Shown here in pieces: positions 28,801 through 31,800 of a DNA stretch of 64,000 nt. The stretch covers positions 682,001 through 746,000 of the forward strand of contig NIVC01000037.1 of the NCBI GenBank assembly GCA_002269645.1, written 5' to 3'. The number at the start of each line of letters is the position of its first letter. The stretch's first letter is position 1. The DNA comes from Macrostomum lignano (Eukaryota). A model generated the notes under the pieces. The model worked only from the letters and a program-made list of their open reading frames with translations. It searched no databases and was not told the DNA's origin. Made by a program: the position numbers and the translations under genes.

Positions 28801-31800
28801 GAAGAGAATTTAGCTTTGCACATGCAAATTCTACTACTGTTTCAAGAGTAGTAGACCTGTGAATCAAACAGATTACCGCCGCTCTGATAAGCTGTTTCCA
28901 TTGTCGAACTAAGCTGACATCCCCAGTTTTAGCGTCTCAGAACCAGTCTGAATTTCTAATTAGCCAAGGCTGCTAATCAGTCAGGAAATTGAAAAAAGCA
29001 GAAATTTATAGCCAAGAGTAACGACACTGATTGCGCCTTAGCCGACTCGGAAATCCTGCGAGTGCACGGGATCTTACTTTGATGTAACCGACAGCGTCAA
29101 GCAGAAGGTTCTCCGGCTTGAGATCGCGGTAAATGAGGTCCAGGCTGTGCAGGTATTCGAATCCCAGCACGATTTGGGCTGCGTAAAATCTCGAATGAGG
29201 CTCGCTGGTCAAGGGTGAGTTGGTGAACGGGGTTGATCCTGGCCTAGCTCAAGCTCGAAGCTGTTTAACTTAATTGCTTGCACACGTACTGAGCGCACTT
29301 AGCTAATTTACTTATATTATCTGGATGACTTCAGATCTATTCAGATGACCTCAGATCTATTCAGATGACCTCAGATCTATTCAGATGACCTCAGACCTAT
29401 TCAGATGACCTCAGATCTATTCAGATGACCTCAGATCCATTCAGATGACCTCAGATCTATTCAGATGATCTCAGATCTATTTAGATGACCTCAGATCTAT
29501 TCAGATGACCTCAGATCTATTCAGATGACCTCAGACCTATTCAGATGACCTCAGATCCATTCAGATGACCTCAGATCTATTCAGATGACCTCAGATCCAT
29601 TCAGATGACCTCAGATCTATTCAGATGACCTCAGATCTATTCAGATGACCTCAGACCTATTCAGATGACCTCAGATCTATTCAGATGACCTCAGATCCAT
29701 TCAGATGACCTCAGATCTATTCAGATGATCTCAGATCTATTTAGATGACCTCAGATCTATTCAGATGACCTCAGATCTATTCAGATGACCTCAGATCTAT
29801 TCAGATGACCTCAGACCTATTCAGATGACCTCAGATCCATTCAGATGACCTCAGATCTATTCAGATGACCTCAGATCCATTCAGATGACCTCAGATCTAT
29901 TCAGATGACCTCAGATCTATTCAGATGACCTCAGACCTATTCAGATGACCTCAGACCTATTCAGATGACCTCAGACCTATTCAGATGACCTCAGACCTAT
30001 TCAGATGACCTCAGACCTATTCAGATGACCTCAGACCTATTCAGATGACCTCAGATCTATTCAGATGACCTCAGATCTATTCAGATGACCTCAGATCCAT
30101 TCAGATGACCTCAGATCTATTCAGATGAGCTCAGACCTATTCAGATGACCTCAGACCTATTCAGATGACCTCAGATCCATTCAGATGACCTCAGATCTAT
30201 TCAGATGACCTCAGATCTATTCAGATGATCTCAGATCTATTCAGATGACCTCAGATCTATTCAGATGACCTCAGACCTATTCAGGTGACCTCAGATCCGT
30301 TCGGATAACGCAAATCCATTTTATGTCTCAGACCCAAACAACACGATTCAGACACAACAAACATGATTCAGACACAACCAACACGATTCAGACCCAAACA
30401 AAATGATTCAGACCCAACCAACATGATTCAGACCCAAACAAAATAATTCAGACACAACCAACATGATTCAGACCCAAACAAAATGATTCAGACCCAACCA
30501 ACATGATTCAGACCCAAACAAAATGATTCAGACCCAACCAACATGATTCAAAGCCATTAATTTCAACAATCTTTGCCACCAGCGTAGTCCATATAAACAT
30601 TGTAAACTGTTTAGTTATAAAATAGCAGAGAACAGTTCATGCAAAATTTTTTAATGCAACACGGCAGAGAGGTAACGAAACGTCAAAACGCAATTATTCG
30701 AGATTCGATTCAAAAGTCTGCAAACTTTCATAGGTGAGCATTCGGATGAAACTGATTCAGGAACAGAAATGAGAATAAATTCTGTCCCAGCCAGTGCAGA
30801 ATACCTTGACGAATCCATCTCCAGCAATGAGTATATTCTCAGGCTTCAAGTCGCGATAAATCAGATCAAGACTGTGCAAGTACTCAAATGCTAGCGTCAC
30901 TTGAGCAGTGTAAACTCTAGTCATTGACTCGCTGGAACACGATTGGTAGTTAATCGAAAATTACAGACTTTTTTGGTAATTCTCTTAGTGTCAACACGAA
31001 TCAACGATAACTCAAATATACAAAAAATAACAATTCAACTGCAATAAAAAAATTTTCTCACCTAAATCGACCAATACGACGCAGGTGTGAAAACATTTCG
31101 CCACCGTTGACAAACTCCAGGATCATATACAGATTGCTGTTGTCCTGCAGTGTACAGCGATTCACGTACGATGGATTGCTAATCTAGCTGATAGTGGATT
31201 GCTAATCTAGCTGATAGTGGATTGCTAATCTAGCTGATAGTGGATTGCTAATCTAGCTGATAGTGGATTGCTAATCTAGCTGATAGTGGATTGCTAATCT
31301 AGCTGATAGTGGATTGCTAATCTAGCTGATAGTGGATTGCTAATCTAGCTGATAGTGGATTGCTAATCTAGCTGATAGTGGATTGCTAATCTAGCTGATA
31401 GTGGATTGCTAATCTAGCTGATAGTGGATTGCTAATCTAGCTGATAGTGGATTGCTAATCTAGCTGATAGTGGATTGCTAATCTAGCTGATAGTGGATTG
31501 CTAATCTAGCTGATAGTGGATTGCTAATCTAGCTGATAGTGGATTGCTAATCTAGCTGATAGTGGATTGCTAATCTAGCTGATAGTGGATTGCTAATCTA
31601 GCTGATAGTGGATTGCTAATCTAGCTGATAGTGGATTGCTAATCTAGCTGATAGTGGATTGCTAATCTAGCTGATAGTGGATTGCTAATCTAGCTGATAG
31701 TGGATTGCTAATCTAGCTGATAGTGGATTGCTAATCTAGCTGATAGTGGATTGCTAATCTAGCTGATAGTGGATTGCTAATCTAGCTGATAGTGGATTGC

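Follow-up and report, generated by a model that had tools for sequence, protein, structure and literature searches.

The catalytic subunit of protein kinase A (PKA-C) of the flatworm Macrostomum lignano is encoded, in the 64,000-nt stretch of DNA analysed here (hereafter the window; contig NIVC01000037.1 of assembly GCA_002269645.1, positions 682,001 to 746,000), by a gene that carries two tandem 127-nt exons, 5A and 5B, for one and the same segment of the kinase core. We favour, with a probability of roughly 0.65, the reading that 5A and 5B form a functional pair of mutually exclusive exons. According to this reading, which is drawn from sequence comparison, an ancestral 127-nt exon encoding PKA residues 139-181 would have been duplicated in tandem long ago; 5B would provide the default form, out-of-frame transcripts would be cleared by nonsense-mediated decay, and 5A would supply a second catalytically competent enzyme in some cells or under some conditions.

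The identity of the gene, already proposed in a first-pass annotation of the window, was borne out by its Pkinase match and by gap-free alignment to solved PKA-C structures. Using tblastn with mouse PKA-C-alpha, the complete gene was laid out on the minus strand. The Pkinase profile PF00069 was covered over its entire length (1-263 of 263), scoring 240.2 bits for the 5A isoform versus 242.4 bits for the 5B isoform, and residues 1-336 of the gene model align without a gap to residues 15-350 of 1ATP, 1CTP and others (phmmer E ~1e-192), with high identity spanning helix A, the core and the C-tail. The translations display the hallmarks of PKA-C, namely the catalytic loop (YRDLKPEN, common to both cassettes), the activation-loop motif and the C-terminal F-x-x-F (protein end ...EFAEF). 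Inhibition of the kinase by cAMP-binding regulatory (R) subunits is predicted. Candidates for the first exon came from a scan for open reading frames with a start codon and a phase-1 donor, and the two that we retained, N1 and N2, have the same strong donor, T/GTAAGT (here and below, the slash marks the exon border). The exons of the gene are as follows, in window coordinates:

38584-38671, minus strand: N1, candidate alternative first coding exon, phase-1 donor; a prediction from the open reading frame and donor scan
38129-38192, minus strand: N2, first coding exon, phase-1 donor; the start of PAA55441.1/PAA79635.1
35621-35811, minus strand: exon 2 (helix A, glycine-rich loop, Lys72 region), donor GC, AAG/GCgagc
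32021-32119, minus strand: exon 3, from tblastn and a script check
31062-31144, minus strand: exon 4, ending in phase 2 (...TTTAG at 31062), upstream partner of 5A and 5B
30805-30931, minus strand: exon 5A, non-canonical A-type cassette, 127 nt, PKA residues 139-181
29078-29204, minus strand: exon 5B, canonical cassette, 127 nt, in the deposited protein
27845-27940, minus strand: exon 6, starting at 27940, downstream partner of 5A and 5B, 100% identical to mouse
27008-27280, minus strand: exon 7
25806-25946, minus strand: exon 8, C-terminal tail ...EFAEF, stop TGA at 25808-25806

Both direct reading and a script confirmed the layout of the pair as first described, that is, two 127-nt exons entered in phase 2 and left in phase 0, with intact AG and GT sites. 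The acceptors read ...gtgttccAG/C for 5A and ...cttgaccAG/C for 5B, the donors AAG/GTattc and AAA/GTaaga, respectively. The two exons adjoin in the same interval, between exon 4 and exon 6, and either of them can be joined to both partners. Their products differ at 15 of 42 residues (27/42 identical) and their nucleotide sequences are identical at 83 of 127 positions, while the 18-residue core encodes the same peptide with 12 of its 18 codons synonymously different; these counts, too, agreed with those reported earlier. Since mouse PKA-C-alpha matches both exons in tblastn (E 3e-14 and 2e-20), their resemblance is not a matter of chance. As 127 nt does not make up a whole number of codons, the reading frame is maintained only when a transcript carries exactly one cassette, and the earlier claim that inclusion of both exons or of neither breaks the frame held, with early stops in both situations: co-inclusion of 5A and 5B leads to a stop 36 codons into 5B, and joining exon 4 to exon 6 with no cassette produces AGG TGA right at the junction.

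The comparison of 5A with 5B yielded a pS of 0.86, that is, saturated, and a pN of 0.20; in the 18-residue core, 12 synonymous changes are accompanied by no amino-acid change, and 5A contains neither a stop nor an indel. These values bear out the proposal of an old tandem duplication followed by purifying selection on both exons, and an exon that had been dead since the duplication would not be expected to display such a pattern. More recent constraint could be examined because the gene occurs three times in the assembly, on NIVC01000037.1 (the window), NIVC01000623.1 and NIVC01002752.1. Among them, 5A has two changes, both synonymous, and 5B has equally many; the splice sites of 5A are kept in all three copies, and variable sites are fewer in 5A (2/127) than in the flanking introns (27/385; Fisher p = 0.0245). 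In all the coding exons compared among the copies (2, 4, 5A, 5B and 7) every difference is synonymous, the introns diverge by ~2-6%, and the deposited 357-aa protein is identical for its two loci (PAA55441.1/PAA79635.1). Three such near-identical copies fit a recently duplicated or partly uncollapsed genome. Age and selection, recent constraint, the Pkinase score and the second Macrostomum gene described below all point to 5A being, probably, a functional exon.

As the protein aligns gap-free to residues 15-350 of the PKA-C structures, the cassette can be placed at PKA residues 139-181, which comprise helix E, the catalytic loop and strands beta7-beta8. The 5A cassette keeps each catalytic residue (Y164, R165, D166, K168, E170 and N171). 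Relative to mammalian PKA, its changes are P141S, H142M, A143T, F145V, A147T, I150V, V151T, T153A, L172I, D175A, Q176G, Q177D, Y179F, I180V and Q181K; those at 141, 142, 145, 147, 150 and 151 lie in the buried start of helix E, and L172I, D175A, Y179F and others in beta7-beta8. In PKA, the ATP pocket has as its floor the beta7 residues L172, L173 and I174, which belong to the catalytic spine, and I150 of helix E packs onto these three residues; the docking surfaces for substrates, the inhibitor PKI and R subunits lie elsewhere, except for E170, which is unchanged in 5A. The changes in 5A thus sit in helix E and the beta7-beta8 hairpin, away from the known docking surfaces, and because the changed positions pack under the ATP site, the swap would likely act not on a docking surface but on nucleotide handling, on kinetics or on allosteric coupling. 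An effect on the binding of substrates, R subunits or PKI, as put forward in the first-pass annotation, is speculation.

The model composed of N2, exons 2-4, 5B and exons 6-8 (357 aa) corresponds exactly to the GenBank proteins PAA55441.1/PAA79635.1; therefore 5B is the annotated exon, in keeping with its earlier description as the canonical one. Unlike these two loci, which carry the full 357-aa model, the window locus is represented by a truncated model, PAA92925.1 (BOX15_Mlig007741g1; 146 aa, ending in RRIGRFR), whose coding range (27937-38192; L003 10001-20256) stops at the fourth base of exon 6. It follows that exon 4 is joined there to exon 6, with both cassettes skipped; the model may reflect a genuine transcript that is non-productive, or else an artefact of mapping to three near-identical copies. 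With regard to the alternative first exons that had been proposed, N2 is documented and N1 stands as a second candidate by prediction. N1 has a GC content at third codon positions (GC3) of 0.83, like the constitutive exons, and is identical across the three gene copies; it was absent from every deposited protein checked by exact look-up. Exact look-ups of N1+5A, N2+5A and N1+5B likewise returned no deposited protein, so that the suggested minimum of four isoforms reduces, among documented forms, to N2+5B plus the model that skips both cassettes.

Two further M. lignano models in UniProt, A0A1I8GYP9 (P0001) and A0A1I8FUY2 (P0263), share the same exon-4 peptide, which is one residue off that of the window gene, and have different cassettes. 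The cassette of A0A1I8FUY2 is of the B type, being identical to 5B at 39 of 43 residues (91%), including the unusual G153, while that of A0A1I8GYP9 shares the departures seen in 5A, in that it lacks P141-H142, carries I150V, L172I and Y179F, and has, as 5A does, an aliphatic residue (V or I) in place of F145. These data suggest that a paralogous M. lignano PKA-C gene has an A/B pair of its own; if so, the exon duplication would predate the gene duplication and the pair would have been kept twice. Two top hits with repeated matches (P0229 and P0230) were rejected as further instances, since their gene models are messy and contain near-identical repeats instead of A/B pairs. Beyond Macrostomum, a PKA-C paralog of Schistosoma mansoni (XP_018653091.1/G4VLY7) possesses an exon that matches in length (127 nt), borders and phases, from which we conclude that the position of this exon is old. 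Its cassette (SEEDSRFYASQVVLAF...LLIASDGYLK) resembles 5A in lacking P141-H142 and in having V150 and A175. It is nevertheless no nearer to 5A than to 5B (31 vs 32 of 43 residues) and, unlike the situation in the window, belongs to a gene of its own that has one cassette. The flanking introns of this paralog (L086) contained no further copy, nor did the nematode-like locus L088 or the metazoan contigs L084 and L085 (Logan/ENA) show a second one, and none of 80 metagenome loci recovered in a scan for exon-5 relatives had two copies, although these loci, mostly short contigs, protists or transcripts, say little. The spiralian splice switch envisaged in the first-pass annotation was thus not encountered, with one cassette in each of these loci; the comparison left out direct orthologs of molluscs, annelids and planarians, and a spiralian switch is neither supported nor excluded by it.

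Several observations weigh against a functional pair. 5A was found in no protein or fragment of the collections searched, in searches made with short queries that returned proteins ~0.9-1.75 times the query length and left full-length ones unseen, and the 90% cluster of the 5B protein contains just that protein and the truncated model, with no 5A form. Little weight attaches to the missing 5A form, since these collections, in which transcript-derived M. lignano fragments of the 5B form were likewise not found, seem to contain no M. lignano RNA data. The GC3 of 5A is 0.45, versus 0.64-0.83 in most coding exons of the gene (exceptions: exon 4, 0.52, and N2, whose codons are AT-rich, 0.43), and 5A alters P141-H142, F145 and D175, which are invariant in all the canonical PKA-C cassettes aligned. 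Between the presumed paralogs the A-type cassettes are identical at 30 of 43 residues (70%), versus 39 of 43 for the B-types, a difference that could stem equally well from relaxed constraint or from specialisation; moreover, A0A1I8GYP9 and A0A1I8FUY2 are unplaced on a locus and may not be one gene. Finally, a search for RNA pairing between the introns, of a kind that might impose the choice of exon, detected no duplex stronger than shuffled controls (absolute z below 1.4). The missing protein, the low GC3, the odd residues at conserved positions and the faster divergence of the A-types would suit a relic, that is, an exon once used and now (almost) never included in productive mRNA, with its intactness reflecting slow decay. 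We hold this to be unlikely in view of the unchanged catalytic core amid saturated synonymous sites, with no stop or indel, the purely synonymous changes among three copies in which 5A varies less than its flanking introns, the splice sites that are intact in each of them, and the occurrence of an A-type cassette in a deposited paralog model.

A role of the pair in dosage control, whereby transcripts with both cassettes or with none are degraded, splicing sets the amount of PKA-C mRNA and the 5A protein is minor, seems to us considerably less probable still. It would make use of the early stops in both out-of-frame outcomes, and the model deposited at the window locus does skip both cassettes, but this model could be the mapping artefact mentioned above, and a poison exon needs no conserved peptide, whereas 5A keeps its catalytic residues, equals 5B in Pkinase score and has undergone only synonymous changes among the copies. 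The repeat-rich genome and the mostly minisatellite nature of the intron separating 5A from 5B might also raise the suspicion that the duplication was created in assembly or that the exons resemble each other by chance. We regard this as refuted for practical purposes, since the two exons differ at 35% of their DNA and hence do not come from a collapsed or duplicated read pile, are found, with their order unchanged, on three independent contigs, and both match PKA at E values of the order of 1e-14 or better. We therefore retain the functional, mutually exclusive pair as the preferred reading.

An internal-cassette precedent in the mollusc Aplysia had been invoked for the pair. It is real as judged from the titles of the relevant papers, which refer to two PKA catalytic subunits generated by alternative splicing and to two N termini (Beushausen 1988 Neuron 1:853; 1992 PNAS 89:1641). 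The Aplysia gene (A1/A2, N1/N2) combines an internal cassette in the kinase core with alternative first exons, as the window gene would with 5A/5B and with N2 plus the predicted N1, the two cassette pairs being likened by description; the window gene differs in belonging to another phylum and in having deposited transcript or protein support for the canonical cassette only. The Aplysia cassette reportedly comprises 42 residues (142-183), a range that would be exactly that of the window exon, and the two Aplysia forms are said to differ modestly in their kinetics and in how R subunits regulate them. Outside PKA, mutually exclusive tandem exons of equal length are known in the kinase core of JNK (MAPK8/9/10; alpha/beta) and of p38-alpha (CSBP1/CSBP2), where the swap alters enzymatic or substrate properties and the fold is kept; these belong to another kinase family and involve another domain segment, and no homology to the PKA pair is implied.

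Elsewhere, variation in PKA-C takes other forms. Mammalian PRKACA and PRKACB and C. elegans kin-1 use alternative first exons with a common catalytic core, and no alternative cassette replacing the catalytic loop is described in the corresponding reports (PMC3625193, PMC3771449). The window gene, with N2 and the candidate N1, is like these genes at its 5' end, and is unlike them in that the variation described for PRKACA and PRKACB is N-terminal, and that for kin-1 both N- and C-terminal. Vertebrates thus vary the N terminus of PKA through first exons and the catalytic core through separate genes. For the S. mansoni SmPKA-C, the variants described so far have N-terminal differences only. To our knowledge, mutually exclusive splicing that exchanges helix E and the strands around the catalytic loop has been described in Aplysia alone; the Macrostomum pair, unannotated until now, is of the same kind. 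Whether the likeness extends to common descent is a tentative matter: it is conceivable, but we would sooner doubt it, that the A/B pair is homologous to Aplysia A1/A2, in which case the switch would predate the divergence of flatworms and molluscs, would have been kept for >500 million years, twice in Macrostomum, and would have been lost in parasitic flatworms and others. On that view, the A-type would be a naturally occurring change in the hydrophobic core beneath the ATP site (I150V together with L172I, and F145V) and would give PKA a second kinetic or allosteric mode.

PKA is the reference protein kinase. The presence of the same layout in a flatworm, intact and under selection in several gene copies, suggests a greater age or a wider distribution of the switch than had been supposed. 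For the M. lignano annotation, the current version misses a predicted isoform, that containing 5A, and holds a truncated model at the window locus. M. lignano is genetically tractable and allows transgenesis, and would be a suitable animal for testing the role of a core-swapped PKA. The value of the finding is moderate, as the principle is already known and the expression of 5A is predicted.

As to how the choice between the exons might be enforced, steric hindrance between the cassettes was rejected because the 5A-5B intron is 1600 nt long, and a clash between spliceosome types was dismissed in view of the uniformly GT-AG sites. This leaves the frame rule, presumably acting with nonsense-mediated decay, together with putative trans-acting factors. 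The inverted repeats of the region are short ones only and at chance level. One of them, a 12-nt repeat (AAAAGUCUGUAA at 30961-30972 and UUGCAGACUUUU at 30712-30723, with one G-U pair), brackets 5A and might place it in a loop; such a repeat is no more than chance would give in a region of this size, and nothing can be learned from its being conserved in three copies so close to one another.

The introns of the gene are rich in long minisatellites with 16-36-nt units, each array having its own unit, which occupy five introns (from exon 2 to 5B) as well as the DNA upstream of the first exons. The 5A-5B intron, mostly minisatellite, differs in length among the three gene copies (1600, 833 and 1560 nt), as does that between exons 3 and 4 (876, 324 and 554 nt), in keeping with differing array sizes. 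The arrays lie at the following window positions:

29324-30297: minisatellite in the 5A-5B intron, 20-nt unit, ~49 copies, size varying by gene copy
30328-30550: minisatellite in the 5A-5B intron, 20/40-nt unit
31172-31970: minisatellite
32189-33424: minisatellite
34494-35370: minisatellite
39568-39703: minisatellite
40424-40742: minisatellite
40755-41365: minisatellite

At the donor of exon 2 (35619-35620) the dinucleotide is GC, with no GT nearby, and it is retained in all three gene copies; the intron that follows looks like a GC-AG intron. The part of the window between 36001 and 40000, which includes both first-exon candidates, has a GC content of 0.25-0.35, versus 0.40-0.55 elsewhere in the gene. 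Among the metagenome loci, four PKA-C-like genes (L006, 2974-3102; L007, 1690-1818; L012, 3855-3983; L021, 3912-4040) have a single non-canonical cassette (SESDTAFYACQVVLAF...ENILIDHTGYLK and relatives, e.g. SESDTAFY...ENILID), which shares some of the features of 5A, namely the lack of P141-H142, V150 in some of them, and I172.

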